A DNA stretch of 33,365 nucleotides, from NCBI RefSeq assembly GCF_001194135.2, contig NC_068991.1, forward strand, positions 61,067,238-61,100,602. Reading direction: 5' to 3'. Below the pieces are notes generated by a model that saw nothing but the letters and a program-made list of their open reading frames with translations, was not told the origin of the DNA and did not search any database. Below are positions 4,291 to 30,222 of this stretch, piece by piece (position 1 is the stretch's first letter; each line of letters opens with the position of its first letter). Made by a program: the position numbers and the translations under genes. This stretch comes from Octopus bimaculoides (lineage: Eukaryota).

Positions 4291-4330
4291 CACACATACA
4301 TATACACACAACATACTTCCTTCAGTTTCT

Positions 4331-4537
4331 AATTTCTTTATTGCCCACAAGAGGCATGAGGAAAGGAATGAGTCAATTACATTGACACCAGTGTTCAACT
4401 GGTACTTATTTTTTCGACCCCGAAAGGATGAAAGGCAAAGTCGATGTCGGCAGAATTTGAACTCAGAACATAAAGACATGAAATACCGCTAAGCATTTCG
4501 CCCAGCGTGCTAACGTTTCTGCCAGCTCGCCGCCTTG
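4331..4537 (-). mobile_element. Young SINE family B with tail T4, 15-bp TSD, inserted in a family A copy
   Basis: CTTCCTTCAGTTTCT is duplicated at 4316-4330 and 4538-4552. On the minus strand there is an A box (tggcagaaacgtt) and a B box (gagttcaaattc), and CpGs are retained. Confidence 0.9.
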
Positions 4538-4670
4538 CTTCCTTCAGTTTCTTTCTGCCAAACCCACTCACAAGGGGTTGGTTTTGGTTAGGCCAGGACC
4601 ACAGTAGAAAATATTTGTCCAAGGTGCCATGCACTGGGACTGAACTCAGAGCCATGTAGTTAGGAATGCT
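4538..4670 (-). mobile_element. Family A SINE head (host of the 4331-4537 insertion)
   Basis: actcacaagg...gtagaa...ccaaggtgccatgcactgggactgaac matches the family A head in reverse. Confidence 0.8.
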
Positions 4671-4924
4671 TGCATGGGAGTGGATGAGATCTGCAGCACA
4701 GCATCTTGCCGCTTCCTTTTTATTTTTCCTCACAGCATATAAATACCTTGATGGCTATGCACACAAACATTGCACATCAAACAAAGCATGCTCCCCTAAT
4801 TTCCTTCCAGTCTTTGCATTCAATGTAAATGTAGCACAACCATGCAACAGCACATGTCGTACACAAGGATGTTGTACTAAAGACAGTCATGTTTTCCCTG
4901 TGACATATTTAAATGGAAAGCTGT

Positions 4925-5035
4925 TCTATATATACATACACATGTATACACACATATAAAAACATATACATATATATGCATATACATACATAAAGATATG
5001 CATACACATGCATATACATATATATACATGTATAC

Positions 5036-5072
<37 letters not shown>

Positions 5073-6120
5073 TACACATATACATGCATAAGTACATATA
5101 TATATATACACATATACATACATATACACACATATATAATATAGATGCGTACATATACACATATATATATATATNNNNNNNNNNNNNNNNNNNNNNNNNN
5201 NNNNNNNNNNNNNNNNNNNNNNNNNNNNNNNNNNNNNNNNNNNNNNNNNNNNNNNNNNNNNNNNNNNNNNNNNNNNNNNNNNNNNNNNNNNNNNNNNNNN
5301 NNNNNNNNNNNNNNNNNNNNNNNNNNNNNNNNNNNNNNNNNNNNNNNNNNNNNNNNNNNNNNNNNNNNNNNNNNNNNNNNNNNNNNNNNNNNNNNNNNNN
5401 NNNNNNNNNNNNNNNNNNNNNNNNNNNNNNNNNNNNNNNNNNNNNNNNNNNNNNNNNNNNNNNNNNNNNNNNNNNNNNNNNNNNNNNNNNNNNNNNNNNN
5501 NNNNNNNNNNNNNNNNNNNNNNNNNNNNNNNNNNNNNNNNNNNNNNNNNNNNNNNNNNNNNNNNNNNNNNNNNNNNNNNNNNNNNNNNNNNNNNNNNNNN
5601 NNNNNNNNNNNNNNNNNNNNNNNNNNNNNNNNNNNNNNNNNNNNNNNNNNNNNNNNNNNNNNNNNNNNNNNNNNNNNNNNNNNNNNNNNNNNNNNNNNNN
5701 NNNNNNNNNNNNNNNNNNNNNNNNNNNNNNNNNNNNNNNNNNNNNNNNNNNNNNNNNNNNNNNNNNNNNNNNNNNNNNNNNNNNNNNNNNNNNNNNNNNN
5801 NNNNNNNNNNNNNNNNNNNNNNNNNNNNNNNNNNNNNNNNNNNNNNNNNNNNNNNNNNNNNNNNNNNNNNNNNNNNNNNNNNNNNNNNNNNNNNNNNNNN
5901 NNNNNNNNNNNNNNNNNNNNNNNNNNNNNNNNNNNNNNNNNNNNNNNNNNNNNNNNNNNNNNNNNNNNNNNNNNNNNNNNNNNNNNNNNNNNNNNNNNNN
6001 NNNNNNNNNNNNNNNNNNNNNNNNNNNNNNNNNNNNNNNNNNNNNNNNNNNNNNNNNNNNNNNNNNNNNNNNNNNNNNNNNNNNNNNNNNNNNNNNNNNN
6101 NNNNNNNNNNNNNNNNNNNN

Positions 6121-6151
<31 letters not shown>
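4925..6151. repeat. (TA/CA/TACA)n microsatellite spanning assembly gap 5175-6120
   Basis: Directly visible, with an N-run. Confidence 0.95.
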
Positions 6152-6154
<3 letters not shown>

Positions 6155-6297
6155 GGAAGTAATGTTAAATTGTGATGTTCGCAAAGGTATTGTTGATAGC
6201 TTCATGGAAATGAATCCATTTCCTACAGGGAATCCTCTGCACAGAACTGTAAGCTGTTCACTGAAATCTTATCTTTGTACAACATCATAAAATCGAA

Positions 6298-7075
6298 CAC
6301 AGGCGTGGCTGTGTGGTTAAGTGGGGTCAGTTTGCATTCATGTGGTTGCAGGTTCAGACCCACTGCATGGTAACCTGGGCATGTGTTTTCTGTTATTGCT
6401 CCAGGCCAACCAATGTTTTGTGCCTGAATTTGGTAGACAGAAACCGTGTGGAAGCCTGTCATATATATATGTGTGTATGTGTATCTGTGTATGGTACATA
6501 TACAGACATGCTTGTCTCATCTTTAACTTGGAGTCATTATTATTAAAACAACTTGGTTCAGATGAATCTTACAAATAATCAATTATATATGTGTTTGTGT
6601 GTGTGTACATGTACATGTCTGTGCGTGTGTGTACATGTATATGTGTCTGTGTGTGTACATGTATATGTATGGATGGGTGCATGCCAGTGTGTGTGCTTGA
6701 CGTGTGTGTGCTTGATGTGTGTGCTTGATGTGTGTGAGTGTGCTTGATGTGTGTGTGTGTGTGCTTGATGTGTGTGTGTGTGTGTGCTTGATGTGTGTGT
6801 GTGTGTGTGTTTGATGTGTGTGTGTATGTGACATGTATATGTCTGTGTCAATGTTTGTCATCCTCATCACCGTTTGACAACTGGTGTCAGCTTGTCAACA
6901 TCTCCATAACTTAGAGGTTCAGCAAAAAAGAGTGACAGAATTATGTACCAGAATTAAGAAAAAAAAAAAACCATAAGCACTAGAGGTGATTCGTTAGACT
7001 AAAACTTCTCCAGGTGATGCCACAGTATGGCTGCAATCCAAAGATTGATACAATTAAAAGACAAAAATACAAAGA
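6298..7075 (+). mobile_element. Family A SINE with greatly expanded internal (TG)n, including a GCTTGA(TG)n minisatellite at about 6690-6830
   Basis: Head ggcgtggctgtgtggttaag...ggttcagacccactgcatgg at about 6300-6460, tail T1 at about 6860-7075. Confidence 0.8.
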
Positions 7076-7132
7076 CAGGTATGTGAATTATGGGAGGAGA
7101 ATAATACACACAGTTGCAACATTTATATATAC

Positions 7133-7787
7133 TAGTGGTTTTCAAAAAGGGTCCATATATCCCTTGGGGGTCCCCATAAGATTTTCTTCTTAAAATGTAT
7201 GTGCAATAAGTTGGTTATATTTCTACACTGGAGGCGCAATGGCCCAGTGGTTAGGGCAGTGGACTCGCGGTCATAGGATCGCGGTTTCGATTCCCAGACC
7301 GGGCGTTGTGAGTGTTTATTGAGCGAAAACACCTAAAAAGCCCCACGAGGCTCCAGCAGGGGATGGTGGCGAACCCAGCTGTACTCTTTCACCACAACCT
7401 TCTCTCACTCTTACTTCCTGTTTCTGTTGTGCCTGTAATTCAAAGGGTCAGCCTTGTCACACTGTGTCACGCTGAATATCCCCGAGAACTACATTAAGGG
7501 TACACGTGTCTATGGAGTGCTCAGCCACTTGCATGTTAATTTCACGAGCAGGCTGTTCTGTTGATCGGATCAACTGGAACCCTCGACGTCGTAAGTGACG
7601 GAGTGCCAACTCCTGATTTCTACACTACACAAAATATTTTAACAACTTCTTTAATAAATTCCTAATGATATTTAATTATGAAAATATAATAAACCTTTTT
7701 AAACATTGAATGGCTATGAGGGTTCACCCAAATAAAACAGAAATCAAAGAGGTCCATAGATAAAAAAAAAATGATTGAGAACCACTG
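7133..7787. mobile_element. hAT-superfamily MITE (CAGTGG-type ends) with 8-bp TSD
   Basis: The left end tagtggttttcaa and right end ttgagaaccactg are 11/13 inverted. ATATATAC is duplicated at 7125-7132 and 7788-7795, and 8-bp TSDs are the hAT hallmark. Confidence 0.85.
7230..7615 (+). mobile_element. Young full-length tRNA-derived SINE family E nested in the hAT MITE, 11-bp TSD
   Basis: A box tggcccagtgg and B box ggtttcgattccc. ATTTCTACACT is duplicated at 7219-7229 and 7616-7626. The head resembles tRNA-Arg, which agrees with octopus OR-type SINEs (from memory, not verified). Confidence 0.9.
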
Positions 7788-7977
7788 ATATATACCTTTG
7801 CCTACCCTGTTGCAGTTGCTAGTAAAACTAGCAGCAGCTGGTTCATAACCAAATGACAGACTTGGTTTGTAGTGAAGTTCATTATAAACCAACCCTAGCT
7901 TAATGAGAAGGAGCTGTTTATACTAAATTAAGATCAATTAAGTGGGGAGAGTCTAAAATTGATATGAATTATCCCAG

Positions 7978-8345
7978 AGATGGCAGAATTATTAGAACAT
8001 ACGAAAAATATATTTGGTGGTATTTTTTCTGGGTCTTTACATTCTGAGTTCAAATCTTGCCAAGATAAACTTTGCTTTTATTTCTCTGGGCATTGATAAA
8101 AGACAGTATCAGCAAAACCCTCCCCTTGATATTGTTGACTTTGTTCCTAAATTCGGAACAATTATTAAAGGCAGTGATCTGAATAAATGCTTTGCGGTGC
8201 ATGTTCCAGCACTTAATATTCTGAGTTCAAATTCTGCTGAAGTCAACTTTGTTTTTCATCCTCCAGGGCTTGACAAAATACAGAATCAGCTATCTACTAG
8301 GAGGTGGGGTTCACTGGTACTGACTAACTCCCTCTCCTCAAAATA
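7978..8345 (+). mobile_element. Two decayed tandem family B SINE copies
   Basis: Two ttctgagttcaaat B-box segments (about 8042 and 8219) separated by an attatt spacer at about 8160. Confidence 0.8.
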
Positions 8346-8727
8346 GTAGCTAAGTCTTCATCAAAGCACAGCTTACAATCTTAAAATATGAAGGACACAT
8401 TGATTGATGTAGTCCAAGGTGCATTACATCAGAACAAAAAACAAAAAAGTCGAAATTGCTATGGCCTGAATGAATTTTTGTAGTAGGTAAGCTTAATCAG
8501 AACTGATTTGCAAGCTAAACAACAATAATATAGAAGGCTACATTGGATAATGTAGTCCTAGATACACTTTGCCTGATAAAAAAAAAAAAAGATACAAAGT
8601 TGTCAGTGGTGAAATGTCTTTGATCATTGGTCTATAAGATCAGAGCAACCATGGGCTAAACAACAGCAACCTTCACTTGAGCTCTCTTTCAACTGAGCCG
8701 CCACCACAAACAGTCATAACCAGTGAT

Positions 8728-8728
8728 A

Positions 8729-8760
<32 letters not shown>

Positions 8761-8830
8761 TAATAATAATAATAATAATGATAATAATAATAATAATAAT
8801 GATAATAATAATGATGATGATGATAATACA
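8728..8830. repeat. (AAT/GAT)n microsatellite
   Basis: Directly visible. Confidence 0.95.
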
Positions 8831-9374
8831 ATTACAGATGCTGACATCAGAAAAGGCTAATGCAACAAAAGGGAAACATTTATTCATATAATTTTCAATT
8901 TCAAAAAGAATTTTTCACCATTTCATTTTTTTTCGTTTGTTTCTTCGTTAATGTATGTTCACAAGCGTGAACAAGCATCAATATATAAATAATATTAATA
9001 ACATTACAACAACGCCAACAACAATAAAGTCGATATCAATAACGGAAACATCATTAATAATAATAATAATGATAATAATAATAATATGATTATAATAACA
9101 TATAGTACTGTACATTTATAAAATTAATAAGGCAAAGAAAGACAGATTTTTGAATTCAAGTGTTTCACGTGTGTGTATGGACGGATACACACACTCACAC
9201 CAAAAAAGCGACACAATGAGTATGTATATGCATGTTTGTGCACGAAATAATATTCCTGTGTAAGTATAGGAGCTGGTATGCTTGTATGCACAAAAGAACA
9301 TGTGAGTATGCACAAGCAGATACATGGAAGCATATGTACACGCCCACCAGTTCACACATGTTCAAGAGTGTGCG

Positions 9375-9377
<3 letters not shown>

Positions 9378-9410
<33 letters not shown>

Positions 9411-9480
9411 CGTGCACAGATGGGTGGATAGATCGATAGACAGACATAGATAGAAAGACAGGTAGATAGATGGATGGATG

Positions 9481-9513
<33 letters not shown>

Positions 9514-9960
9514 GTAGATAGATAATCAGACAGGTAGATAGATAGATGGATATATATATATAATNNNNNNNNNNNNNNNNNNNNNNNNNNNNNNNNNNNN
9601 NNNNNNNNNNNNNNNNNNNNNNNNNNNNNNNNNNNNNNNNNNNNNNNNNNNNNNNNNNNNNNNNNNNNNNNNNNNNNNNNNNNNNNNNNNNNNNNNNNNN
9701 NNNTTATATTTATATATATATTGGAAGAGAGAGAGAGATCAATAGACAGATAATCGGATAAACAGATCAATAGACAGATAAACAAATAGACAGACAGACA
9801 GATGGACAAATAGATAGACAGGTAGATAAACAGACAGACAGAAAAATAGATAGATAGATAGAAAGATAGAAAGATAGATAGATATATAGATAGATAGTTA
9901 GATAGATAGATAGACAGACCGACAGAGTGATAAATAGACAGACTGACAGATAGCTAAATT
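9378..9960. repeat. (TG)n plus (GATA/GACA)n microsatellite spanning gap 9565-9703
   Basis: Directly visible. Confidence 0.95.
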
Positions 9961-10499
9961 AGTATACACATGCAAATGTGTGTTAAATATGTGTGCATGT
10001 ATGAATATAATATACTCATCTAACAGTATATAGATATACGAGAATGGCAGAAAGATGAATAAGAGAGAGAAAGGAACGAGGAAAAAAGTGGTTTTAAATT
10101 ACTTTTCAAATCTATACTTTTGTTGTGTTAATTTTATAAATATATGCAATAATAACCTGCACTTGTTATTTTTGCCACAACTACAACAATAAACAGGGAC
10201 AACAACAACTACAATAACCCAACTCGTTGCAACCGTCGTTTCAATAAATTGTTCCATCTAGTGCATTATAAGTATATTGTTTCAATTTCATAACAAATTA
10301 CACACTGAGTTAATTAAACTTTGAAATAAACAAAGAATGCAATATATAATAATAATATTTTGTAGTGTTGAAAGTGAAATTTGATTATTTTTCCGTTCGA
10401 CATTTGTTTCAAATCAATTGGTAACATCCAAGTAGAATATTGCTGAATATTGTAACATACCTCCTACTGCTCTGAGAGAGGTGAAAGTTTATAGAAATG

Positions 10500-10853
10500 G
10501 GTGTATGTGGGTGTGTATGTGCAAATATATGTGTGCGTATGTATATATGCATGTATCTGTGTGCGTGTGTGTGTGTCTGTCTGCCTGTCTATCTATATAT
10601 ATGTACATATACATACATGTGTACGTTTATTCATATGAATGTGTGAGGGCTTGTGTGTATATGTCTCTCTCTCTCTCTCTCTCAGTATACGCACACACAC
10701 ACACACACACACACCATACACATCTATCTATACATTTGCATATACATGCGTGCATTCATGTGTTTGAGTGTGAGTATATTTGTGTATATGAGTGAGTGTG
10801 TGTATATATGTGCATGTCCCTCACTCTCTCTCCCTATATATATATATATAGAA

Positions 10854-10910
<57 letters not shown>

Positions 10911-10927
10911 TATATATATATACAGAA

Positions 10928-10960
<33 letters not shown>

Positions 10961-11958
10961 NNNNNNNNNNNNNNNNNNNNNNNNNNNNNNNNNNNNNNNN
11001 NNNNNNNNNNNNNNNNNNNNNNNNNNNNNNNNNNNNNNNNNNNNNNNNNNNNNNNNNNNNNNNNNNNNNNNNNNNNNNNNNNNNNNNNNNNNNNNNNNNN
11101 NNNNNNNNNNNNNNNNNNNNNNNNNNNNNNNNNNNNNNNNNNNNNNNNNNNNNNNNNNNNNNNNNNNNNNNNNNNNNNNNNNNNNNNNNNNNNNNNNNNN
11201 NNNNNNNNNNNNNNNNNNNNNNNNNNNNNNNNNNNNNNNNNNNNNNNNNNNNNNNNNNNNNNNNNNNNNNNNNNNNNNNNNNNNNNNNNNNNNNNNNNNN
11301 NNNNNNNNNNNNNNNNNNNNNNNNNNNNNNNNNNNNNNNNNNNNNNNNNNNNNNNNNNNNNNNNNNNNNNNNNNNNNNNNNNNNNNNNNNNNNNNNNNNN
11401 NNNNNNNNNNNNNNNNNNNNNNNNNNNNNNNNNNNNNNNNNNNNNNNNNNNNNNNNNNNNNNNNNNNNNNNNNNNNNNNNNNNNNNNNNNNNNNNNNNNN
11501 NNNNNNNNNNNNNNNNNNNNNNNNNNNNNNNNNNNNNNNNNNNNNNNNNNNNNNNNNNNNNNNNNNNNNNNNNNNNNNNNNNNNNNNNNNNNNNNNNNNN
11601 NNNNNNNNNNNNNNNNNNNNNNNNNNNNNNNNNNNNNNNNNNNNNNNNNNNNNNNNNNNNNNNNNNNNNNNNNNNNNNNNNNNNNNNNNNNNNNNNNNNN
11701 NNNNNNNNNNNNNNNNNNNNNNNNNNNNNNNNNNNNNNNNNNNNNNNNNNNNNNNNNNNNNNNNNNNNNNNNNNNNNNNNNNNNNNNNNNNNNNNNNNNN
11801 NNNNNNNNNNNNNNNNNNNNNNNNNNNNNNNNNNNNNNNNNNNNNNNNNNNNNNNNNNNNNNNNNNNNNNNNNNNNNNNNNNNNNNNNNNNNNNNNNNNN
11901 NNNNNNNNNNNNNNNNNNNNNNNNNNNNNTATATATATATATATATATATATACTTAT

Positions 11959-11991
<33 letters not shown>

Positions 11992-12010
11992 CATACATAT
12001 GTGTCAGCAT
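10500..12010. repeat. Compound (TG/CA/CT/TA)n microsatellite spanning gap 10961-11930
   Basis: Directly visible. Confidence 0.95.
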
Positions 12011-12343
12011 GTGTTGTACATATGTTATTTGTAAGTGGAAAGAATCACACTTCAACAAAAATCTTTGATTTATTAGCTTTTAGTAATTTATAAATAAACA
12101 CCCAAGGCATACTTAAGCTATTTGCAGCATGAATGATCAATGTAATAACAGTAGTTGAATAGTAAATAGTCATATCAAACTGTCTGATCATCCTTCTTCT
12201 CTAACTCTCTAACCCAAACAAACTCGGCTTTACCGACCAGATATATTTATGCAAACAGAAGTCTTTAACCATCTTTGGACACCTTGACTTTCAGTCTCAA
12301 ACTTCAAATGAACATCATATACTATCGACTAACCAAATTCGAT

Positions 12344-12792
12344 GACTGGCACCTGTGCCAGTGGAGCACTAACAGCAATGTCCGAGCGTGATCATTGCCA
12401 GAGCAGCTGTCTGGCTTCTGTGCCAGTGGCACGTAAATAGCACCATTTGAGCATGATCGTTACCAGCGTCGCCTTACTGGCACGTTAGAAAACATTTGAG
12501 CGAGGTTGTTGTCAGTGCCGCTGGACTGGCTCCTGTGCAGGTGGCACGTAAAAAACACCATTTTGCGCGTTGCCGTTGCCAGTACCATCTGACTGGCCCT
12601 CGTGCCGGTGGCACGTAAAAGCACCCACTACACTCTGGGAGTGGTTGGCGTTAGGAAGGGCATCCAGCTGTAGAAACTCTACCAGATCAGATTGGAGCCT
12701 GGTGTAGCCATCTGGTTCGCCAATCCTCAGTCAAATCGTCCAACCCATGCTAGCATGGAAAGTGGACGTTAAACGATGATGATGATGATGGT
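12344..12792 (+). mobile_element. Family C SINE-like element with 4-5 tandem internal modules of about 60-67 bp and a (GAT)n tail
   Basis: Repeated gactggc..tgtgcc.gtggcacgtaaa..gcacc modules, then ggttggcgttaggaagggcatccagctgtag...gttaaacgatgatgat. Same 3' end as 3240-3406. Confidence 0.85.
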
Positions 12793-13427: not shown

Positions 13428-13628
13428 TGATATTGCTGCCCTCTTTTGAGTTTCCTGCCTTGATATTGGTTCATTAGGGATCTTGAATAGTAAGAGGTCA
13501 AGTTGTTTGTTGAAAACATCTACTCCCACTCCATGGAGATCCCTCAGGTGTTTTGGCAAGGAGTTAAATAGCTGTGGACCCTTGAATCCCAAGCTATTGC
13601 AGTACATGGTCCTCATAGAGCTGGCCCA
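13428..13628 (-). mobile_element. 5'-truncated non-LTR retrotransposon, ORF2 C-terminus (CR1/L2-like)
   Basis: The translation NSLGFKGPQLFNSLPKHLRDLHGVGVDVFNKQLDLLLFKIPNEP...RAA matches the recalled GPxLFNxLP...FKxxLDxxLxxIPDEP pattern at the end of CR1/L2-group ORF2. The clade assignment is tentative. Confidence 0.7.
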
Positions 13629-14065
13629 ATCATTAGCACTCAACACAAAATGCTTAGCAGCATGTTATCTATCTTCATGTTCTGAGTTCAAATCCTGCTG
13701 AGGTGAACTTTGCCTTTCATTCTTTTGGGGTCAATGAATTAAGTATCAGTGAAACATTGAGGTTGATATAATCAACAAGTCCCCTCCCCCAAAATTTCAG
13801 GCCTTGTGCCTTTAGTAGAAAGGATTATTATCATTATCAAGGTGGCAAACTGACAGAATTATTAGCATTCCAGGCAAAATGCTTAGTGGCACTTTGTCTG
13901 TCTTTATATTCTAAGTTCAAACACCACTGAGGTCAACTTTACCCTGTCATCCATCCAGAGTCAACAAAAGAAGGACCAGTTGAGCAAAGGGGGTGATGTA
14001 ATTGACTTACTCCATTCCCCTGAAATAGCTAGCCTAGCCTTGGGCCAAAATTTCAAACTAATGTT
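13620..14065 (+). mobile_element. Two head-to-tail family B SINE copies with tail T3
   Basis: B-box segments at about 13680 and 13910, and a caggccttgtgcctttagtagaaaggattattatcattatc junction at about 13800-13838. Confidence 0.85.
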
Positions 14066-14229
14066 TTAAAATTACTTGAAGCAAAGATAAAGCATTTCAA
14101 CAGAAATGTGGTAACAAACAGGTTATATGCACTAATATCTCACAGCTGCTTACACACATGGGCACGCGCATGTGCATGCAAATATCGGGTAGTAGATTGG
14201 TAGAACTAGGGTTAGAGTACCATGTGACA

Positions 14230-14420
14230 TTTAGCTGTGTTCTTCTATGTTTTGAGTTCAAGTCTGCCCAGGCTGACTTTGCCCTTCCTCTTTTCTGAGG
14301 TTGTTAAAAATAAAGTAGTTGTCATACACTGAGGCTGACATAATTAATTGACTATAACAATGGAGGTGGTGCTCAAACATTGCCACAGTTCAATGACTGG
14401 AACCAAAAAATAAAAAGGTA
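14230..14420 (+). mobile_element. Family B head joined to the family A tail T1
   Basis: ttttgagttcaagtctgcccaggctgactttgcc followed by ggtggtgctcaaacattgccacagttcaatgactggaacc. Confidence 0.65.
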
Positions 14421-15709
14421 AAACAAAAAAAAAAATACAAAAGAAAATCCAAAGAAAAAGAGAAGAATTCAGAGAGACAGAGAATGTTATCTGATCATAT
14501 CTGTATGGGAGGAGGTGAAGAATAATTATTAGAAATCTTGTTATATACTGATGAATTTATTCTTGCCCACAAATGGGAATCAAAAGAAATAAATAAATAC
14601 TAGAAGGAATAGATAAAGGCGCCTGTTTATTTGCTCTTGAAATTTGGAAGCATTAAAAGGGGTTTTGTTAAGAATATTTTATGAATGCTGTTGGAGTTTG
14701 AGAAAGTTAATGGCCCATAATATAGCTGACAGGCAAATCTGATTATCACAGCTGAATGGAGAATTTCCTTCTAATGGCTAGCAAAAGAACCTTAATGTTT
14801 TTCCAAATCACTGAAAGCGAAAAATCTTTGATGCCAAGAAACTATTGTATTGATTAATTATCTCCATGCCTGATAAGATTTTAATTATTATCTAATCTCT
14901 ACACAATTGGCATTCCTTATACTTTTGCTGAAATGAAAATCACAAATTTGTCATTTTACTACTGTAACATTAAAGATGGCAATTTATATGACACAAGATT
15001 CTGCTTTCTCAGGATGAAATATAATTGAAAAATTAGACATTTTAAATATTCATTTAAAATTGGACATCTTAAATATTCATTTGTCTCTCCATTAGCTTAT
15101 TTTCAAATTCTTCTTCTGCCTGCCCTCCCCCCCCCTCTCTCGCTCTGTGTCATGTGTTCTATATTTTTTATTTTCATTGCTGGAAATAAAAGATTTGTCC
15201 TTATCATAAATAAGCAAGACTCTTCTTTCCTGATTGTTCTAATTGAAGTTTGAAAAAAAAAAAAAATGGTAAGAAGAAAGATTTAAATAGAAATGGGCAG
15301 AAAGTATTTTATGTCCAGCTACAATAATATTCAATTAATGCTCACAGACTGGGGAAAGAAACGGCAAAGCTAAAATACTATGTGGGTGGTTGGGAGGAAA
15401 GAGAGAGAGAGAGAGAGATATTATTACTTTAGTGCATCGTAAATAAAAGTAAGTCAGAAAAATCTTTGTTTACAACTATTAGTTTTAAATAAGATATTTT
15501 ATATTTTAAAAGCATTAATTTACCTTTAATACAAAGAAAAAAAAACATTAAAAAAAAAAACCCCACATATATGACAAAATGTGTTAAAGTGAAAAACACT
15601 AAAACAGCGAAAGCAATTAATCGATAACTTGTCAGTGTATAAGGAGTGGAGAATCTCTCAAATACATCAATCTAAACAATTCTAAAACAATAATGATAAT
15701 AATAATAAT

Positions 15710-15921
15710 GGTTTCAAATTTTGGCACATAGCTAGCAATTTGGGGGAAGGGGTAAATTGATTACATTGAGCCCAGTGCTCAATTGGTACTTATTTTATCG
15801 ACCCTGGAAAGATGAAGACAGCCCTGGCAGCATTCAAACACAGAACATAAAGATGAACAAAATGCTGCTATGCATTTTACCTGGAGTGCTAATAATTAAG
15901 CCAGCTTGCCATCCTAAGGAC

Positions 15922-15954
<33 letters not shown>

Positions 15955-16876
15955 CTTTTCTACTATAGACATAAGGTCCAAAATTTTTGGGGAGGGGACT
16001 AATCGATTTCATTGATCCCAGTGTTTCACTGGTACTTAATTTATCGACCTCGGAAGGNNNNNNNNNNTAATAATAATCCTTTCTACTGAAGGCACAAGGC
16101 CCAAAGTTTTGGGAAGGGGGATAGTTGACTATATCGATCCCAGTGTTTCACTGGTACTTAATTTATCGAACCCCGAAAGGATGAAAGGCAAAGTCAACAT
16201 TGGCAGAATTTGAACTCAGAATGTAGCAAAATACCACTATGCATTTCGTCCAGCATGCTAACAATTTTGCCAGCTTGCTGCCTTAATAATAACAACAACA
16301 ACAACATTAATAATAATAATAATAAATGCCCGGATGCAGTACCAGGCAGTGGCTCTCATGGCTTCTTATCTTAACTGATTGGAAGTGTTGTTATGTACAT
16401 TGTTTTGTCTTCATGTAAAAGACGGGCTACAGCAAATATTCTGCTCAATAGCACAGATTTGCTTGTCAGTTGTTTGACCTTAACCAGTTGAGCATGTCCC
16501 TTAGTGGCTGACGATATGTGCATCTCTGATCATGAGCAGAAGTAGTGGGGGAGCATCATACTCATGTGTTGAGAGGAATTCTTTGGGGTTTGGATAATTC
16601 ACCTTTGGAAACAGGTGTTTCTTTCAACATCATTAAACAACCCCTATTCAGGGACTTAAGCAGGATGGGCTACTCGACCTGAAGAAAATTCTAACTGGGC
16701 CCCACCTGCAAGGTCATGTGCTGTTTATCTTGATATGAGATGACCATGTCGTGCACATATGGTTGTGATGCATGTACTTGGCCTACCCTTATCAGATGGA
16801 TAATTATGATGGGTATACTGGGTTTTGTATATTTTACCCCTGTGTCACTTTGATGACATGCACTGCTCTCTCACTC

Positions 16877-16913
<37 letters not shown>

Positions 16914-17310
16914 GTTTCAAATTTTGGTACAAGGCCAGTTATTTTGGGGGTGGGGTTGAGTCAATTACATAGACCCCAATGTTTGACAGGTACTTATTTT
17001 ATTGACCCTGAAAGGAAGAAAGACAAAGTCAACCTTGGTGAAGCTTCAACTCAGAACGTAAAGATGGATGAAATGCTGCTAAGAATTTTGCCAGCGTGCT
17101 AACAATTCTGTTAGCTTGCTGCCTTAATAACAATAATAAACATGATAATAATATAATGGTTCATTCTAGTTTACATACAAGGCAAGCAATTTTGAAGGGA
17201 GCGGGCAAGTCAATTATGTAAGTCCCAGTATTCAGCAGATGCTAATTTTATTAACCCTGGAAGGATGAAAGGCAATGCTGACCTCAGTGGAATTTGAACA
17301 CAGAACGTAA
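15710..17310 (-). mobile_element. Tandem array of five family B (tail T3) SINE copies in one orientation, each bounded by (AAT)n
   Basis: Copies at about 15710-15917, 15953-16057 (cut by a gap), 16078-16284, 16913-17125 and 17157-17310. All carry ggtacttat/tcgacccc/aaaggatgaaaggcaaagtc/ttgaactcagaac-like segments. Confidence 0.85.
16325..16876. mobile_element. Unclassified element of about 550 bp inserted in (AAT)n inside the SINE array
   Basis: Abrupt boundaries at (AAT)n on both sides and higher GC than the flanks. No tRNA-like boxes, terminal inverted repeats or long ORF seen. I recall similar sequence as an interspersed octopus repeat but cannot verify it. Confidence 0.6.
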
Positions 17311-21017: not shown

Positions 21018-21058
<41 letters not shown>

Positions 21059-21059
<1 letters not shown>

Positions 21060-21270
21060 GTTCCAAATTTAGGCACAAGGCCAGCAATTTCAGGGAGGGG
21101 GTTAAGTCAACTACATTGGCCCCAGTATTCAACTGGTACTTATTTAATCAACACAAGGAGGAAAGACAAAGTCAAACTTGGCAGAATTTGAACTCAAAAC
21201 ATGGAAGTCAGATGAAATGCCGCTAAGCATTTTGCTCAGGGTGCTAACGATTCTGCCAGCTCACCACCTT
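21059..21270 (-). mobile_element. Family B (tail T3) SINE between (AAT)n tracts
   Basis: Full reverse copy, ggttccaaatttaggcacaaggcc...ctgccagctcaccacctt. Confidence 0.85.
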
Positions 21271-21271
21271 G

Positions 21272-21309
<38 letters not shown>

Positions 21310-21310
<1 letters not shown>

Positions 21311-21846: not shown

Positions 21847-21882
<36 letters not shown>

Positions 21883-21886
21883 TATA

Positions 21887-22240
21887 ATCCTTTCTACCAC
21901 AGGCACAAGGCCTGAAATTTGGGGGAGGGGATAGTCAATTATATTAACCTCAGTACCACACTGGTACTTACTTTATCAACCTCAAAAAGATGTGTATTTG
22001 CATATGTATAAGTGTGTGGTTTGTGTCTGTTAGCCTTGACTTTACATGGTTGTTGCAAACGAATGTCTTTCATTTCCAGTATTCTGCACAAAAATGTGTG
22101 GCCATGAGGAAATATTACCTTGCTTGGAAACAGGTGAGGGCTGGTGGCAGGAAGGAATGTCCAGCCATAGAAAATCTGCTTTGAAAAACTCTATCCAAGC
22201 ATGGAAAAGTGGACATTAAAATGGTGATGATGATGATGAC
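21887..22240. mobile_element. Partial family B copy (minus, about 21887-21985) followed by a family D body and tail (plus, about 22005-22240)
   Basis: cctttctaccacaggcacaaggcctgaaatttggggg, then gaggaaatattaccttgcttggaaacaggtgagggctggtggcaggaagg...gatgatgatg. Confidence 0.75.
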
Positions 22241-22497
22241 GCTGCACATGTATGTAGTCTGGCTCTTTACTGTCTGCATACTCACTGCAATTCTCAATTG
22301 TAACAATAATGTTTTTTTTTACAAGGCTATACAACTTAAAAAGATGAATGTATTGAACTGAATGAAGTCAAGTATTCTAATATATATTTGATTATCCCTG
22401 GAAGGATTGAAAACTGTATGAACCCTAAAAGAAAGTGTATGAACCCTAAAAGAAAGGGAGTGTAAGATACTGTATAGCATCAAGACCAGATTTTCAT

Positions 22498-22885
22498 ATT
22501 TTTCTTTTACTTTTTCTTTCAGTCACTGGACTGTGGCCAAGCTGGAGCACTATTTCCTTGCAGGCTCTGATCAATCAAGCCGATTCCAGGACTTATTTTA
22601 AGTCTGGTACTTATTCTATTAGTCTCTTTTGACAAAATGCTAAGTTAAGGGGAAGTAAACAAACCAACTTCAGTTGTCAGGTGGTGAGCAAACACACACA
22701 CACACGCATATATGATGGGTTTCCAGGGCTTCCACACAACACAATTTTATGTCAGCGAGATTCACTCACAAGGCATTGGTTAGCCTGGGGCTATAGTAGA
22801 AGGCCCAAGGTGCTGCACAGAGCGGAATGAACTTAAAACCATGGCATTGCAAAGCAAGCTTCTTAACCACCCAGCCATATATGCA
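22498..22885 (-). mobile_element. Full-length family A SINE with tail T1
   Basis: Reverse head (gcaagcttcttaaccacccagccat), internal (CA)n and reverse tail (cagtcactggactgtggccaagctggagcac). Confidence 0.8.
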
Positions 22886-25345
22886 TCTATCTATAACATA
22901 CACGCATCCTGTTATTCACTCACTCATTCTCTCTCTCTCTCTATATATATATATATCTATCTATCTTTCTCTCTAAAAGGGAGGCCTGTTTTAAAAGAAA
23001 AGAATATGAAAGAAAAAGAAACACTGATGGAAGACAGATGATAGAATGGAAAAATGATCTGTATTTGGAATGTTAATATGAAAAGTTGGGTAATCCAGGA
23101 ATATTGGGTATGGAGAAGTGGGAATCATTCAATGGATTAATTCTGGTTTTCATTAGCACTTCCCATAGTTTTGAAGGGAATGCTTTGAGTGGAGGCAAAG
23201 GTAGACGAAACCATGGCTCGGCTCTTCAATAGTTGCTAACCAGAGTTGAGTCATGCATGTATTCATATGAGTAGCTTCATAAGAAGTTGATAGAAAGGAG
23301 ACTAGTTACAAATGGGGTGGGAAAGGAGCAGATACAAGATTATGCATCAGATGACAGGGTAACCTTTCATGGTATGACTTGTGAATTTAGGTCCTTGTAC
23401 TACTCGACAATGATCTTTGCTGGGAAACCTTTTTTCTTGTACTATGCAAGGAAAGGCATAGTCAGAGGCAGCACATCAAAAGACTGCGTTATCTGTAACA
23501 GAGGCAAAGCTAAACACTTTGAAAAGAAGGCAAATAGGAAAGTGTGATGTTCACATTTTTACCGTTTTTACAGAGGATGCTAGTGATATAAGTGAAATAA
23601 GCTGAACTAAAATGAGAGTCACAAACCAAAGTTAAAGAATCAGCTGAGAAATTATGGCCGTTTTACTAAGAATTTTTTCTTTTTTTTTTTTTCCAATTTT
23701 TAAAACTAAACAGATGAGATGAGGAGAAGCAACTGTATAACAAGCTGAACAAACAGTGTTGGGTTAGGGGTTATCGGGCTTGATTGCATGCAGGCAAGAA
23801 GAAATAAAAGAAATAAAAATAAAACATAAAAACGACAAAAGTGATGTTATATCTGGAGAAATTTCCTCTTTGAGAGAGGGACAGGCAGAAATATAAAGAT
23901 AGCGAGAGAGAGAGGGAGGAGAGGAAAGAAAGAAAAAAAGAAAGAAAATACTGTTAATCTTGGTTTTAACCAATTGAGAGGGATATCATTAAAGAGTGCA
24001 GTAGAAATAGTTGAAAAGAAATTAAATAAAAGAAAAAAATGCTTATTAGACAACCTCAGTTTGACCTTTCAGCATTAAGGCAATGGGAAAAAAGCATTTA
24101 GAGAAGATTATTGTCAATAAGATTAGCTTGATCATAGCCGATTACTCTGCTTTAGATGCTAGCTGTACAGGATCTTCATTCTTGTAAATTAGATTCAGTA
24201 ATGCATGGAAATAATAATAGCGATGATGATGATGATAATAAAATTACGAGGATAACAGTGAATATGATGATAACAATGATGATGATGATAACAATAATGA
24301 TGAAAGCCTTCTCAACGATTTCTCATTTCTTGGATCATATTTCTCTGGAAATTTTGTCAGTTGAAAGAACTGACGCCNNNNNNNNNNNNNNNNNNNNNNN
24401 NNNNNNNNNNNNNNNNNNNNNNNNNNNNNNNNNNNNNNNNNNNNNNNNNNNNNNNNNNNNNNNNNNNNNNNNNNNNNNNNNNNNNNNNNNNNNNNNNNNN
24501 NNNNNNNNNNNNNNNNNNNNNNNNNNNNNNNNNNNNNNNNNNNNNNNNNNNNNNNNNNNNNNNNNNNNNNNNNNNNNNNNNNNNNNNNNNNNNNNNNNNN
24601 NNNNNNNNNNNNNNNNNNNNNNNNNNNNNNNNNNNNNNNNNNNNNNNNNNNNNNNNNNNNNNNNNNNNNNNNNNNNNNNNNNNNNNNNNNNNNNNNNNNN
24701 NNNNNNNNNNNNNNNNNNNNNNNNNNNNNNNNNNNNNNNNNNNNNNNNNNNNNNNNNNNNNNNNNNNNNNNNNNNNNNNNNNNNNNNNNNNNNNNNNNNN
24801 NNNNNNNNNNNNNNNNNNNNNNNNNNNNNNNNNNNNNNNNNNNNNNNNNNNNNNNNNNNNNNNNNNNNNNNNNNNNNNNNNNNNNNNNNNNNNNNNNNNN
24901 NNNNNNNNNNNNNNNNNNNNNNNNNNNNNNNNNNNNNNNNNNNNNNNNNNNNNNNNNNNNNNNNNNNNNNNNNNNNNNNNNNNNNNNNNNNNNNNNNNNN
25001 NNNNNNNNNNNNNNNNNNNNNNNNNNNNNNNNNNNNNNNNNNNNNNNNNNNNNNNNNNNNNNNNNNNNNNNNNNNNNNNNNNNNNNNNNNNNNNNNNNNN
25101 NNNNNNNNNNNNNNNNNNNNNNNNNNNNNNNNNNNNNNNNNNNNNNNNNNNNNNNNNNNNNNNNNNNNNNNNNNNNNNNNNNNNNNNNNNNNNNNNNNNN
25201 NNNNNNNNNNNNNNNNNNNNNNNNNNNNNNNNNNNNNNNNNNNNNNNNNNNNNNNNNNNNNNNNNNNNNNNNNNNNNNNNNNNNNNNNNNNNNNNNNNNN
25301 NNNNNNNNNNNNNNNNNNNNNNNNNNNNNNNNNNNNNNNNNNNNN

Positions 25346-25685
25346 AGGATTTTAAGCCCAAATGTCACTTGGAACCTCATGGAGAAGGAACCGATTGATT
25401 AAAAGAAAAATGAAGAGAAAAGTCAACCCAAGCAGGATTTTAAGCCCAAATGTCACTTGGAACCTCATGGAGAAGGAACCGATTGATTAAAAGAAAAATG
25501 AAGAGAAAAGTCAACCCAAGCAGGATTTTAAGTCAGAATGTCACCAAATACTACATGGAGAAGGAATTGGTTATTTTAAAGGAAAATGAGGAGCAAAGTC
25601 AACGTAAGCAGAATTTTAAGTAATGTCACTAAATACAACATGGAAATGAAATTGGTTAAGAAACAAATACAAAGCAGGATTTTAA
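25346..25685. repeat. 88-bp tandem repeat: two identical units, two diverged units and a fifth unit interrupted by a MITE
   Basis: Unit starts at 25346, 25434, 25522, 25610 and 25675. The array begins at gap 24378-25345. Confidence 0.9.
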
Positions 25686-25909
25686 CCCTTTTGATACCAA
25701 CATACCTGGTATCAAAATACTGCTGGTTTTATGATACAAGCTTCCTGTTTTAAGGTGACCCTAAATTAAAGCTTTCCACCAAAATTTCCTGTTTATTTCT
25801 GTTCCAAACATCAGCTTAATAAGGGCAAAATTATTTTACTAAATTATTATTTCCAACATTTATTAAAACAAAACCAGTGTATTTTAAGAGAAACATGGCA
25901 ACAAAAGGG
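25686..25909. mobile_element. piggyBac-like MITE with TTAA target duplication
   Basis: TTAA at 25682-25685 and 25910-25913. The ends cccttttgatacca and tggcaacaaaaggg are 12/14 inverted, with the CCC...GGG termini typical of piggyBac. Confidence 0.8.
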
Positions 25910-26025
25910 TTAAATCAGAATTTGATTCCTGCAGTACCATTTTTGTCATTCATTATCTTCTTTGACAGTAAAAATACTTTAAGAACTGAGATAATTTCAA
26001 AAGAAAAAAAAAAAAATTTCTTCTT

Positions 26026-26405
26026 AGGCACAGATATGGCTGTGTGGTTAAGAAGCTCACTTTGCAACCCTATGGTTTTGGGTTCAGTCCCAACTGCATG
26101 GCATCTTATGTAGTAGTCGTCTACTCTATCTTCAAGTTGACCACTGCCTTGTGAGTAAATTTGGTAGATTGGAAACTGTGTGGAAGCTTCTGTGTGTGTG
26201 TGTGTGTGTGTGTGTGCATGTCCCACTCCCACTGCTTAACAACTAAGGTTGGGTTGTTTATGTCCCCGTAACTTAGTGATTTTGGTAAAAGAAACTGATA
26301 GAATAAGTACTGGGGTCAATTTGTTCATTTAAACCCTTTAAGGTGGTGCCTCAGCATGGCCACAGTCCAATCACAGAAACAATTAAAAGATAAAAGATAA
26401 AAGAT
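26026..26405 (+). mobile_element. Full-length family A SINE with tail T1
   Basis: ggctgtgtggttaagaagctc...gggttcagtccc head, internal (TG)n, and ggtggtgcctcagcatggccacagtcc...(gataaaa)n tail. Confidence 0.85.
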
Positions 26406-26499
26406 TAACTTTGCAAAATTTTGGTGGAGAAACTATTGAATATTAGAATGATTGGATCCTGGATTGTTTTGTCTTTTTTATTTATTTATCAATTTCCAG

Positions 26500-26646
26500 G
26501 AAGATTTTCAGAAAACAAGGGCAGAACCAATACAATAAGTCATCAACAGTATTTAAAAGCTCCAATGCAGTACAAAAGCTGGTTGTGAAATCCTGTTATC
26601 TATTTAAGTCACCAAACTGTAATAACAAACCATTAACACAGTTTTG
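26500..26646 (+). CDS. Candidate 147-nt phase-2/phase-2 exon (KIFRKQGQNQYNKSSTVFKSSNAVQKLVVKSCYLFKSPNCNNKPLTQF)
   Basis: A long T-rich tract precedes ttccag|g, and the donor is TG|GTAAGG at 26647. Only this frame is open. No homolog recognised. Confidence 0.35.
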
Positions 26647-27528
26647 GTAAGGAGGGAAGAAAAATATTGGAATATCTTGCAAAGTAAGATTTCACTCTCT
26701 CCAGGATAGTGGAAACAATATCTGGCAGCTTTTCCAGATTTTGGCATAAAGCTTAATAAAATTTCAAACTGTACTGCATATCCATAAAGATCAACATTAT
26801 GTTATTTATGGATGTAGTTATTTATGGATATAGAGGTCAATGAAAAGAAAGACCAAAAACTGTTATGAGAGATAGAAGTTAGAGAAGGAATAGACTTATA
26901 GCCATAGCTTCTGCTACCATTGTATTGATGATAGTGAACGACTAAGAATAAAATTACAGTTATATCCCAGAACCATAGAAAAATATTTAAGTAAGATTTT
27001 GTGATGGTGTTTATTTCATCTTTCAAAGCATTAAAGAAAACAATGTAGCAGATAGAAGAATGTTATGACAAAGGGTTTTGACTAAAAATGAATGCAACAA
27101 GAACAGCTTCATTATGTGGAATGAGACCCAAAACATTCATCAAATATTTTTTTTAACGACAATAAAGAGCAATAATATAGAATTAAAAAAATATAAAGCA
27201 TAGAAACTGTACACTATTTTATCTCTTCTGCCGTATCTGTTTATTATAGATACAGTATCTGTTTATTGTTTATAATACGAGAGACAAGTTGGTAGGGCAA
27301 GTATAAGAAAATTGGACAGATATTTTCAGCTGGTTAAGTTTGGTTTTCTAAAATAGATATCAATGATAAACTAAAAGCTGTAGTTTCTTAGGGAAGAGTG
27401 TCTCTCATCACCAAAATGTTGCACTCAAACACTTTGTCCAAATATTTATCCCTAAGACTGCAACAATGTCAAACTTTCTCGGTTTTTTTTCTTTTCTTTT
27501 TTTTTTTTTTGTTGTTAATACTTCTTAG

Positions 27529-27573
27529 CTTGCAGAATTCCCAAATAGTTTCAACCACCTCAACCTCTGCATT
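27529..27573 (+). CDS. Candidate 45-nt phase-2/phase-2 exon (LQNSQIVSTTSTSA)
   Basis: A poly-T tract precedes cttcttag|, and the donor is TT|GTGAGA at 27574. Confidence 0.2.
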
Positions 27574-27717
27574 GTGAGAAACAGAATTTGAACTGACTCT
27601 AGATGTTCTTCCTCCACTAAATGAAAATGAGTAATTGAAAGTATGCTCAGCATTTACTTTTTGAATCTATAAATTACTCAAGCTTTACAGTATATTGACA
27701 ATTTCCACAATGTATAA

Positions 27718-27990
27718 TAGGCACAAGCATGGCCAAATCACATGGTTTTAGGTTCAGTCCCACGACATGGCACCTTGGGCAAGTGCCTTCTCTCATAGTC
27801 CCAGTTCAATCAAAGCCTTGTGAGTGGATCACTATCATGTAATCAGTGTTTTTGTTTCCACTCATCCATGACAACAAGCGATGGTTGATGACAGGAAGGA
27901 CATCCAGCCACAGAAAATCCACCTCAACAAATACTGTCCAACCCATGCTAGCATAGAAAAGTAGATATTACGATGATGATGATGATGATG
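27718..27990 (+). mobile_element. Family A head joined to family D tail, internally deleted
   Basis: ggttcagtcccacgacatggcaccttgggcaagtgcc, then gacaggaaggacatccagccacagaaaatcc...gatgatgat. Confidence 0.8.
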
Positions 27991-29029
27991 ACAATGATGA
28001 TGTTTCCCAACCTTCTGCTAGTCCAGCATCCCCTCGGTGATGACAAGTTAAAATGGTCAGCCCTCCTCCTTAAATGTTCTATACAGATATTCAAAGGCAA
28101 GTGAAGTTAAATTTGTATTTGTTACTTATACATTCCCAACATGCCCTCCATGTGTTAGTACCCCATGTTGAGAAACAATTGCATGGTAGATATACTCCTA
28201 ACAGTTGCTTGAAGCTACATTTTAGCCTCATACAAAAAAAGGTAGTCTTCTAGCAAACCAAGACCATACATCAATCTTAAAAAGGTAGGCATTATATTTT
28301 TGGTAAGCCAGTGTTATGACTTGGCTTTAATTCCCAGTTGTGGCTAAATTCCCTTGAGTTTATTTACATAATGTATGGCTTCAGGAAAGGCATGAATATC
28401 ACAACTTTTATTCTCCTCAACCTGAAGTACATAGAGCTTTCCCCTTTGAAATATGTTTTTAACCACAAACGTCAAACAATGACAATTTTCCAAACATGTA
28501 TGAGATAAATAGAACATTTTGTTTTTTCAATTTCTGAAATTTTCTAAAAACAAAAAAAAAGAGTTTGAAATGTTGCTTTATTCAAAAAACAAAAAATACA
28601 ACCTATCATTCATTATAAACCATTCTCTTCTCTTTGTCTGCCATTTCTTATTGTATTCACATATTCACAAACAATACTGGATCTCTGCTCTGTACTTTCA
28701 ATACCATATTCCACCCACAAGAAATCTCTCAGTTAACCAAAATTTCTTCATCATTACCATTACCGTTGCCATTGACACCATTATCATCATCATTGTCATC
28801 ATCTCCATCATCATCATCATTCTCATGATCATCATCTTCATTTAATGAGAATGAAATATATGAATAATACACGAAAGTGTTAGATAGACTAGTGAGTAAT
28901 TTATAAAGAGGCAAGAAAATATAAGTTGGAGTCATTCGGATGACATTAATGAAATTTATACATTGATTATCATTAGGTAAAATACAAAATGATAACTATT
29001 TGGCAAAAGAAAGATTATTAATAATAATG

Positions 29030-29072
<43 letters not shown>

Positions 29073-29814
29073 TAAAATTATGAGGTTAACACTGAATGCA
29101 ATGATAATGAAATGATAATAACAGTGATGAAACACTTCTCAAAGACTTCCCAATCAATAATAATAATAATAATAATATAAAAAGAAGAAGAAGAACAACA
29201 ACAACAACAACATTAATAATATATATATAATAGAAGAAAGAAAGAAATGTATTTTAAAATCCTCTAAGATCCAGTTATCCAGAAGAAATCACTTCTAACT
29301 TATTTTGCAAAGTAAAAAAACTAATTCTAATTTTGAGCTAACAAAACTTTCTAATTAAGTCTGTAAAAATGCTAATTCAGCAATGAATTTTTCCCCCTCA
29401 AATTAACCTCTTCTGTCTTGAAGTCATCATTAACACTGATTTAACAACCATTTTCCTCTATATTGGTAAGGTGTGGGTTGGATAGAAGCTATAGTTCAGT
29501 AAATCACAAGTCATTCCGATTCCATGCTATCTCATCTGCGAAGTCCAACATTTTGAGGCCAAACTACACAACTTCCAACGATGCCGTTTGCTGACAACAC
29601 ACAACACTTTTCACCCCATCGAGTATTCATTGATTGTTAAGTGGTGTTAAAAATTCTGTCTCCTTAAATGAGCAAGACATAGCTAGACAACTGACCAAGT
29701 AATCACATCAAAGGAGATCCTATGGTAGATTAATGACTTAGTAACTGATTACTATAATTGATGTATTTAATTTCATACCTTTCAGTTAAGAGTTCAGATT
29801 TGTATTGGAGTCAT

Positions 29815-30222
29815 GCAGATATGGGTGTGTGGTTAAAAAGCTTGCTTTGCAACCAGGTGGTTTCAGGTTCAGTCTCACTGTGGGATATCTTGGGCAAGTG
29901 TCTTCTACCATAACCTCAGATTGACTAATGTTTTGCAAATAAATTTGGTAAACAGAAACTGTGTTGAAGGCAGCGAGCTGGCAGAATCATTAGCAAGCTG
30001 GGCGAAATGCTCAGCGGTATTTCGTCTGTCTTTACGTTCTGAGTTCAAATTCTGCCGAGGTCGACTTTACCTTTCATCCTTTCAGGGTCAATAAATTAAG
30101 TACCAGTTATGCACTGGGGTCGATGTAATCGTCTTAATACCTTTGTCTGTTCATGTTTGTCCCCTCTATGTTTAGCCCCTTGTGCACAATAAAGAAATAA
30201 GAAACTGTGTAGAAGCCTATTG
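29815..30222 (+). mobile_element. Family A SINE head hosting a family B insertion
   Basis: Head gggtgtgtggttaaaaagcttgctttgcaacc...cttgggcaagtgtc, resuming as gaaactgtgtagaagcc after the insert. Confidence 0.85.
29970..30199 (+). mobile_element. Young SINE family B with tail T4, 16-bp TSD with one mismatch
   Basis: AGAAACTGTGT[T/A]GAAG at 29954-29969 and 30200-30215. A box at 29979-29990, B box GAGTTCAAAT at 30041-30050. The central gcctttcatcctttc.gggtc.ataaattaagtaccag resembles, from memory, the MetaSINE-type core. Confidence 0.9.

Follow-up and report, generated by a model that had tools for sequence, protein, structure and literature searches.

The locus described here raises the question of whether one short interspersed element (SINE) can seek out another. 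In a 33,365-nucleotide stretch of the Octopus bimaculoides genome (contig NC_068991.1, positions 61,067,238 to 61,100,602, hereafter the window), two SINEs of a family B, both ending in the tail CTTGTG..CAATAAAGAAAT, interrupt two SINEs of a family A at the same position of A and in the orientation of the host. An initial annotation had proposed that this represents homing of a SINE to a SINE, either through a sequence-specific long interspersed element (LINE) or through annealing between tail and target. The two insertions are independent events and the target preference is real, and the most probable reading is a target-primed insertion guided by short matches of the tail and the head to the target and concentrated on an abundant SINE, so that the site would be a favoured and not an obligatory one.

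The first composite is read on the minus strand. Its host is a family A head 5' of the insertion (4553-4700, with an approximate 5' end), which aligns with other A copies and is 76 % identical to the A consensus over 4537-4661, followed by the 5' copy of a target-site duplication, AGAAACTGAAGGAAG (4538-4552), which falls within the motif (C/A)AGAAACTG..GAAG of the A consensus. Insert 1 (4331-4537) is a short variant of family B lacking the 26-base segment TGTCTGTCCTTGTTTGTCCCCTCTATGTTT; its body spans 4536-4331, base 4537 (C) could be host or insert, and its tail CTTGTGGGCAATAAAGAAATT, the end of which reads ...CTCTTGTGGGCAATAAAGAAATT, belongs to a copy 90.7 % identical, gap excluded, to the consensus of the CAATAAAGAAAT-tail copies. 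The 3' copy of the duplication (AGAAACTGAAGGAAG, 4316-4330) is identical to the 5' copy at 15 of 15 bases, and family A continues past the site (4250-4315), colinear with intact A after excision, with an internal repeat that is TG/TA-rich at 4279-4315, after the second duplication copy. The second composite is read on the plus strand and has as its host a family A head of the TGTG site variant (29811-29953), placed by alignment to A copies and 79.6 % identical to the A consensus over 29823-29969. The 5' copy of its duplication, AGAAACTGTGTTGAAG (29954-29969), has a final AAG in common with the B 5' end AAGG. Insert 2 (29970-30199), a long variant of family B with the tail CTTGTGCACAATAAAGAAATA and a tail end reading ...CCCTTGTGCACAATAAAGAAATA, is 92.1 % identical to the same insert consensus, and is followed by the 3' copy of the duplication, AGAAACTGTGTAGAAG (30200-30215; 15 of 16 bases identical to the 5' copy), and by the rest of family A (30216-30280), recognized by comparison with intact A, which begins CCTATTGTGT... 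and then diverges. When the flanks are joined with a single duplication copy, both composites are colinear with uninterrupted A copies. Direct reading confirms the initial annotation in placing two tail-sharing B copies at a homologous A site in the orientation of the host, each with its own duplication; it had also placed an internal microsatellite of the host directly after the site, and this is not clear in host 2, where there is just CCTATTGTGT, host 1 being TG/TA-rich.

The window is AT-rich (35 % GC) and dense in short interspersed repeats and microsatellites. It contains seven runs of N, none of them in 4250-4700 or in 29811-30280 (the closest one occupies 5175-6120); because no such run lies within either composite, their structures are independent of gap continuity, and the 25 kb spacing of the two composites is the sole item made uncertain. 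For comparison, 65 kb of additional octopus DNA was used, comprising three loci (L001, L002 and L061) around three transposase-like genes, which together with the window gives a pooled sample of 92.7 kb. The SINE families of the window are also present in the O. bimaculoides and O. sinensis loci at 85-94 % identity, which, together with the relatives of the Tc1-like ORF described below, identifies the window as nuclear DNA of an octopus. Both families behave as SINEs, with short, dispersed and diverged copies (the window has 14 matches to B and 9 to A, and the loci of both octopus species have more) and target-site duplications (15/15, 15/16 and 13/13 bases, and one diverged pair of about 16 bases). 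By eye only, motifs resembling a B box were seen in B (GAGTTCAAATTC) and in A (GGTTCAGTCCC); ARAGORN found no tRNA in the SINE heads, and an Rfam search of the heads gave no match. The middle part of B, GGGGTCGATAAATTAAGTACCAG, we take to be reminiscent of the CORE domain (CORE-SINE; octopus OR2, Ohshima and Okada 1994).

Both site variants are also found in intact A copies. The variant AGAAACTGAAAGAA occurs in the A copies at 3446-3604 (minus strand, uninterrupted, with an empty target site, AAAG variant) and 31883-31969, and the variant AGAAACTGTGTGGAAG in the copies at 6307-6468 (plus strand, uninterrupted, with an empty target site), 22726-22876 (minus strand, uninterrupted, the site holding a small internal duplication) and 26038-26187 (plus strand, uninterrupted), the last three being of the TGTG variant; apart from 31883-31969, all were identified by alignment and a match to the A consensus. 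In the pooled sample about 20 A copies keep the target site. Five of the nine pre-insertion AGAACTG-type sites (AGAAACTG) are the family A site, and because of this share a modest sequence dependence would already steer insertions into A; the shorter motif AGAAAC occurs 115 times, about seven of them at the A site. The small duplication in the copy at 22726-22876, GTGTGGAAGCCCTGGAAACCC, lies exactly at the target motif, and this segment of A may be prone to breakage or slippage. An extra AGAAACTG is found at 26289 (plus strand) in the 3' module of an A copy (TTTTGGTAAAAGAAACTGATAGAATAAGTAC), in a context resembling that of the head site (TTTGGTAGACAGAAACTG), and there is no insertion there.

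The shared position, orientation and tail would also be seen if a composite of A with B inside had formed once and had then been copied whole by retroposition or segmental duplication. The host heads, however, are mutually 62.5 % identical and the inserts 86.7 %, and as the hosts are far more diverged than the inserts, amplification of a composite as a unit, for which equal divergence is expected, was rejected. Both duplication copies within each composite carry the subfamily variant of their own host, so that copying would need parallel changes at four places, the 26-base segment TGTCTGTCCTTGTTTGTCCCCTCTATGTTT missing from insert 1 is present in insert 2 and in the O. sinensis copies, and no similarity was found between the two regions beyond the composites except for simple repeats. 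The last observation led to the rejection of a segmental or inverted duplication, and the positions of the N runs to that of a role for assembly gaps; copying of one composite is accordingly regarded as exceedingly improbable, and the point made in the initial annotation, that two host variants speak against one pre-formed composite, is supported. Passage of the insert from one A copy to another through gene conversion or ectopic recombination, or double template switching between A and B RNAs during the insertion of A, would be helped by the number of A copies and by their sufficient similarity near the site, and template switching of reverse transcriptase between SINE RNAs is known in general. 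Conversion should have carried donor flanks along, yet each duplication is the variant of its own host, on which ground conversion with donor flanks was rejected; the hosts also look older (76-82 % identity to the A consensus) than the inserts (91-92 % to the insert consensus), and the exact direct repeats of 15-16 bases at the ends are the usual signature of staggered nicks, which makes such an exchange highly unlikely. Chance is the remaining alternative, in which the insertions fell at random into a SINE that is very abundant and drew attention only post hoc in a large scan. Family A is indeed dense, with about 20 target-bearing copies in the pooled sample, and many windows were covered by the scan. 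A random insertion hits the same base in the same orientation with a probability of about 1.1e-4, so that 1e4 to 1e5 random copies would give 1-11 matches to the site genome-wide, and pairs of matches within one 33-kb window would number only 1e-5 to 1e-3 genome-wide; one independent copy, described below, again adjoins the site. Coincidence is very improbable on these figures, and because the probability of a match of site and orientation and the expected number of pairs are so low, a target preference exists, the coincidence being far beyond chance.

Whether this preference amounts to homing depends on where other members of the lineage lie. Copies with the tail CTTGTG..CAATAAAGAAAT (the CAATAAAGAAAT-tail B lineage; sequence string GTTTAGCCCCTTGTGGGCAATAAAGAAAT) number four with DNA and one known as an open reading frame (ORF). 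The 65 kb of additional DNA contributed two of these, both in the O. sinensis locus L002. One (2624-2855) lies outside family A, between the halves of a diverged duplication, ATCATCGAATCTCTTT and ATTATTCAATCTTTT, that starts ATTATT/ATCATC, and its tail continues ...AAAGAAATAGAT before the ATT of the duplication. The other (9627-9866) lies within a 5'-truncated family A element, antisense to its host, and is flanked by a 13-base duplication, TCTTCCAAATCCA (13/13), which in the sense of A reads TGGATTTGGAAGA and stops one base short of the (C/T)(A/G)GAAACTG motif; its priming nick is 1 base from that of the window copies, on the opposite strand. In this independent sample the exact event was repeated in 0 of 2 copies, and 1 of 2 falls no more than 40 bases from the site (p = 0.017). 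Over all copies with DNA, two of four are at the exact site, these being the discovery pair, and three of four fall within a 30-base stretch of A. The fifth copy is the annotated 56-residue O. bimaculoides ORF P0131 (A0A0L8H450), available as a peptide only and without DNA context, which was the sole true match when a representative library was searched with the antisense ORF (43 residues) of insert 2; back-translated, it gives the tail ...CAATAAAGAAAT, one base and then AGAA.., and its flank is not readable as family A. No protein sharing words with a 69-residue ORF that spans insert 1 together with its 3' junction was found, and when six-frame SINE peptides were queried together with a Tc1-like transposase, transposases dominated the matches listed (best 120). 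An exact 18-mer occurred at 58 loci in metagenome contigs, all by chance and without similarity to family B, and a lineage-specific 24-mer and a 25-mer of the family B core had no match in prokaryotic genome contigs or viral contigs; none of these three collections yielded octopus sequence.

These copies point to a segment of family A that is hot for insertion, and not to an address that must be used. True homing would have the B lineage moved by a sequence-specific LINE, in the manner of the Tx1 group, with an endonuclease that recognizes the A segment and with most copies lying there. Both nicks are identical in the two independent events of the window, the nick of the third copy is 1 base off on the other strand and three of four copies lie within the 30-base stretch, all as homing would have it, and there is a precedent in SINEU-3, which is found almost exclusively in Mariner-N4_AMi by way of Tx1-Mar LINEs (PMC4494074). 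A target-specific element would have a large majority of its copies at one position, and with n = 4 we find two exact, one abutting in antisense and one unrelated. One of the two independent copies is outside A and has an ATT-type duplication, the copy of L002 that is within A is reversed, which a strand-specific recognition site would not yield, the flank of the fifth copy does not read as A, and other family B members go to the repeat of their own tail. The autonomous LINE with the same 3' end that the initial annotation envisaged was not found in about 93 kb, where the only LINE present closes in (GAT)n. Strict homing through a sequence-specific LINE is thus not supported by the small independent sample, and we regard it as improbable. 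The suggestion of homing survives as a site preference (a random insertion would match with a probability of about 1.1e-4) and does not survive as homing to family A through a sequence-specific LINE, one of two further copies being outside A and the other antisense at an abutting site.

Ordinary members of family B follow a simpler rule. The other twelve B copies of the window end ...GGCCTTGTGCC.AA.T.GAAA..ATT(ATT)n, and of the nine ordinary copies in the window and L001 whose 5' end could be defined, six directly follow ATT repeats, although perfect (ATT)n of at least three units makes up less than 1 % of the sequence (enrichment p ~ 6e-11). Because six of nine ordinary copies sit in ATT repeats, family B inserts where the target resembles its own tail. 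The preceding repeats are mostly the tail of another B copy, which results in head-to-tail arrays: two copies at 13618-14057 (plus strand), the second of which begins inside the ATT-repeat tail of the first, three in (ATT)n at 15698-16284 (minus strand), one of them cut by a gap of 10 N at 16058-16067, and two in (ATT)n at 16901-17310 (minus strand), besides a copy with (ATT)n on both sides at 21047-21270 (minus strand). Arrays of two to four copies, some of them 5'-truncated and each one beginning within the ATT-repeat tail of its predecessor, were seen at 7977-8344, 13618-14344, 15698-16284, 16901-17310 and L001 316-1070. Tails end in a short tandem repeat, (ATT)n, in ordinary B, and full tails of the CAATAAAGAAAT lineage end in AGGTATT or AGAT+ATT. 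The start of the duplication corresponds to the tail repeat in ordinary B, and for the window pair the match is partial (AGAAAC against AGAAAT). Annealing between tail and target, the other mechanism put forward in the initial annotation, fits better than homing. In all four targets of the CAATAAAGAAAT lineage there is a T at -10/-9, in just three independent contexts of an AT-rich genome, and as an RTE-type signature a T run upstream of the nick is suggestive only.

We consider it probable that the window pair arose by an insertion of this kind. Family B would be an octopus SINE of about 230 bases, spread by target-primed reverse transcription with a LINE partner, and a B lineage with the 3' end ...CTTGTGGGCAATAAAGAAAT(AGGTATT) would have entered two old, already diverged A copies independently, with the first-strand nick placed alike in both events, just 5' of AGAAACTG, and the second nick likewise, 15-16 bases downstream, after GAAG. 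Where complete, the tail of the lineage reads ...CAATAAAGAAATAGGTATT and is homologous to that of ordinary B, ...TTAGAAAGGATTATT; in the window pair and P0131 it is cut back to AAAGAAAT plus one variable base, after which the target starts with AGAAA(C/T) (AGAAAC in the window pair, and AGAA as read from P0131). At the 3' end, the bottom strand of the A site, once nicked (3'-TCTTTG...), could pair with AGAAAU or AGGUAU of the RNA tail, the tail unit AGAAAT being resembled by the target AGAAAC. At the 5' end, the top-strand 3' end ...GAAG would match the first bases of the element, AAGG, as in the real overlap of insert 2. The A motif AGAAACTG(N4-5)GAAG would then offer short matches to both ends of the element at the usual stagger of 15-16 bases, a T run about 10 bases upstream of the nick may contribute, and the abundance of family A, which accounts for about half of the sampled AGAAACTG sites, would multiply the effect. 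Ordinary B would act likewise with its own tail, entering (ATT)n and for the most part the tails of earlier B copies. We infer that pairing of the element ends with the target, rather than sequence recognition by an endonuclease, sets the site.

Several observations weigh against this reading. It draws on one ORF and only four copies with DNA. If, in the simplest form of the model, AGAAA of the tail paired with the primer, the junction would be CAATAAAGAAACTG, and this is not observed; the junctions keep AGAAAT and an extra base (T or A) before AGAAAC, and to accommodate this one unpredicted base the model needs either a base added without a template or the repetition of a tail unit. With 115 occurrences, about seven of them in A, AGAAAC is too common for a match of six bases to explain two insertions into A, so that other parts of the site must contribute. 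The antisense copy of L002 lacks any match between tail and target and yet lies 1 base away, which hints at a structural or protein-recognized feature of the A segment. A partner LINE with the CAATAAAGAAAT tail or an (ATT)n tail was not found in the pooled sample, which is too small to exclude one; the RTE-like LINE of L002 was considered as the partner and rejected, its 3' end and (GAT)n tail being unrelated to family B. A stronger form of guided insertion, in which CAATAAAGAAAT-tail B truly seeks the A segment of about 30 bases through pairing at its 3' (AGAAAT/AGAAAC) and 5' (AAGG/GAAG) ends, with a large share of its copies there, appears unlikely.

The closest precedent for a SINE recurring at a defined position of another repeat is the crocodilian SINEU-3, which was found in the DNA transposon Mariner-N4_AMi in 86 of 88 examined copies and has its target in common with Tx1-Mar LINEs (Kojima 2015, PMC4494074). 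The octopus case shares with it the independent recurrence of a SINE at a defined position of another interspersed repeat, together with a 16-base duplication that is characteristic and tandem copies between which a duplication is sandwiched. The two differ in that SINEU-3 has 86 of 88 copies at its target and a known LINE group, whereas octopus B has two of four at the exact site (three of four in the region), no known LINE and a SINE as its target. In RTE-related SINEs, the base with which the duplication opens correlates with the microsatellite-like tail, and about one helical turn (some 10 bases) upstream of the nick there is a T stretch (Nishiyama and Ohshima 2018, PMC6007223), and RTE LINEs are the LINEs reported to be active in octopus (PMC9115989). 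Here, too, the start of the duplication can be predicted from the tail repeat, as seen in the (ATT)n tail and (ATT)n targets of ordinary B, and the T at -10/-9 of all four CAATAAAGAAAT-lineage targets may correspond to the T stretch. The RTE-related elements, however, show microhomology of one or two bases and no preference for a repeat family, whereas the octopus match may involve both ends and concentrates insertions on one site of one SINE. The octopus case fits better among retroposons in which a microsatellite-like tail guides priming than in the class of SINEU-3. Ordinary B also resembles the microsatellite-specific LINEs Dong (TAA)n, Kibi (TC)n and Koshi (TTC)n (Kojima and Fujiwara 2004, as cited in PMC4494074) in acting as a (TAA/ATT)n-seeking element that forms head-to-tail arrays in its own tail repeat. 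Those are autonomous LINEs whose specificity is assigned to the endonuclease, whereas B is a SINE whose preference may rest on pairing of its ends with the target.

Alu elements insert into the A-rich tails and linkers of older Alus, the L1 endonuclease having a preference for TT/AAAA, and form a comparable hot-spot of SINE within SINE because an abundant SINE carries a preferred short target. The Alu target is a generic A/T motif present at many positions, whereas in octopus it is one exact base in a head of 160 bases. In the literature, nothing was found on a SINE-in-SINE hot-spot of single-base precision in cephalopods, and to our knowledge such a hot-spot has not been described for this group.

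Other elements lie in the neighbourhood of the composites. A decayed Tc1-like DNA transposon occupies 30699-31900, in which the helix-turn-helix part retains an intact ORF of 142 residues, whereas a frameshift disrupts the DDE part. The nearest named relatives of this ORF (30699-31127) are Octopus sinensis and O. bimaculoides proteins, and the protein is 60-88 % identical to sequences of Cordylochernes scorpioides (a pseudoscorpion), Drosophila willistoni, Caligus (a sea louse) and many short metagenome and Logan contigs, a spread compatible with horizontal transfer. Fragments of an RTE-like LINE reverse transcriptase are present at 32951-33364, running off the right end of the window, and at 16300-18985 of L002. 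The O. sinensis member of that LINE family has a 3' end that closes in (GAT)n and has nothing in common with B. Its last 200 bases or so also occur as separate short copies, at 3198-3397 and 12592-12790 in the window, five times in L002 and twice in L061. At two loci (window 3198-3604 and L002 6560-6911) a short LINE 3' copy lies in antisense directly after an A head and a TA/ATC repeat, which is possibly a second recurrent nested arrangement, or else a composite family. The stretch at 282-742 is a long imperfect repeat of trinucleotide type with V-, L- and P-run open frames on both strands, of low complexity and not a gene.

In its present state the case is a small-sample example of a known phenomenon, and it bears on repeat annotation, in that nests of SINEs are mistakable for new composite families. 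If CAATAAAGAAAT-tail B were truly target-seeking, it would be the first documented homing of a SINE into a SINE, with the RNA template rather than an endonuclease setting the address. If the preference were to hold genome-wide, the two B lineages would provide a natural experiment in how LINE-driven insertions are given their address, since two sister SINE lineages, distinguished mainly by their last 15 bases, have separate targets, (ATT)n in one case and a site in another SINE in the other. The RNA tail, and not the endonuclease, would then be indicated as the determinant, and part of the nested, clustered architecture of octopus SINEs would be explained.

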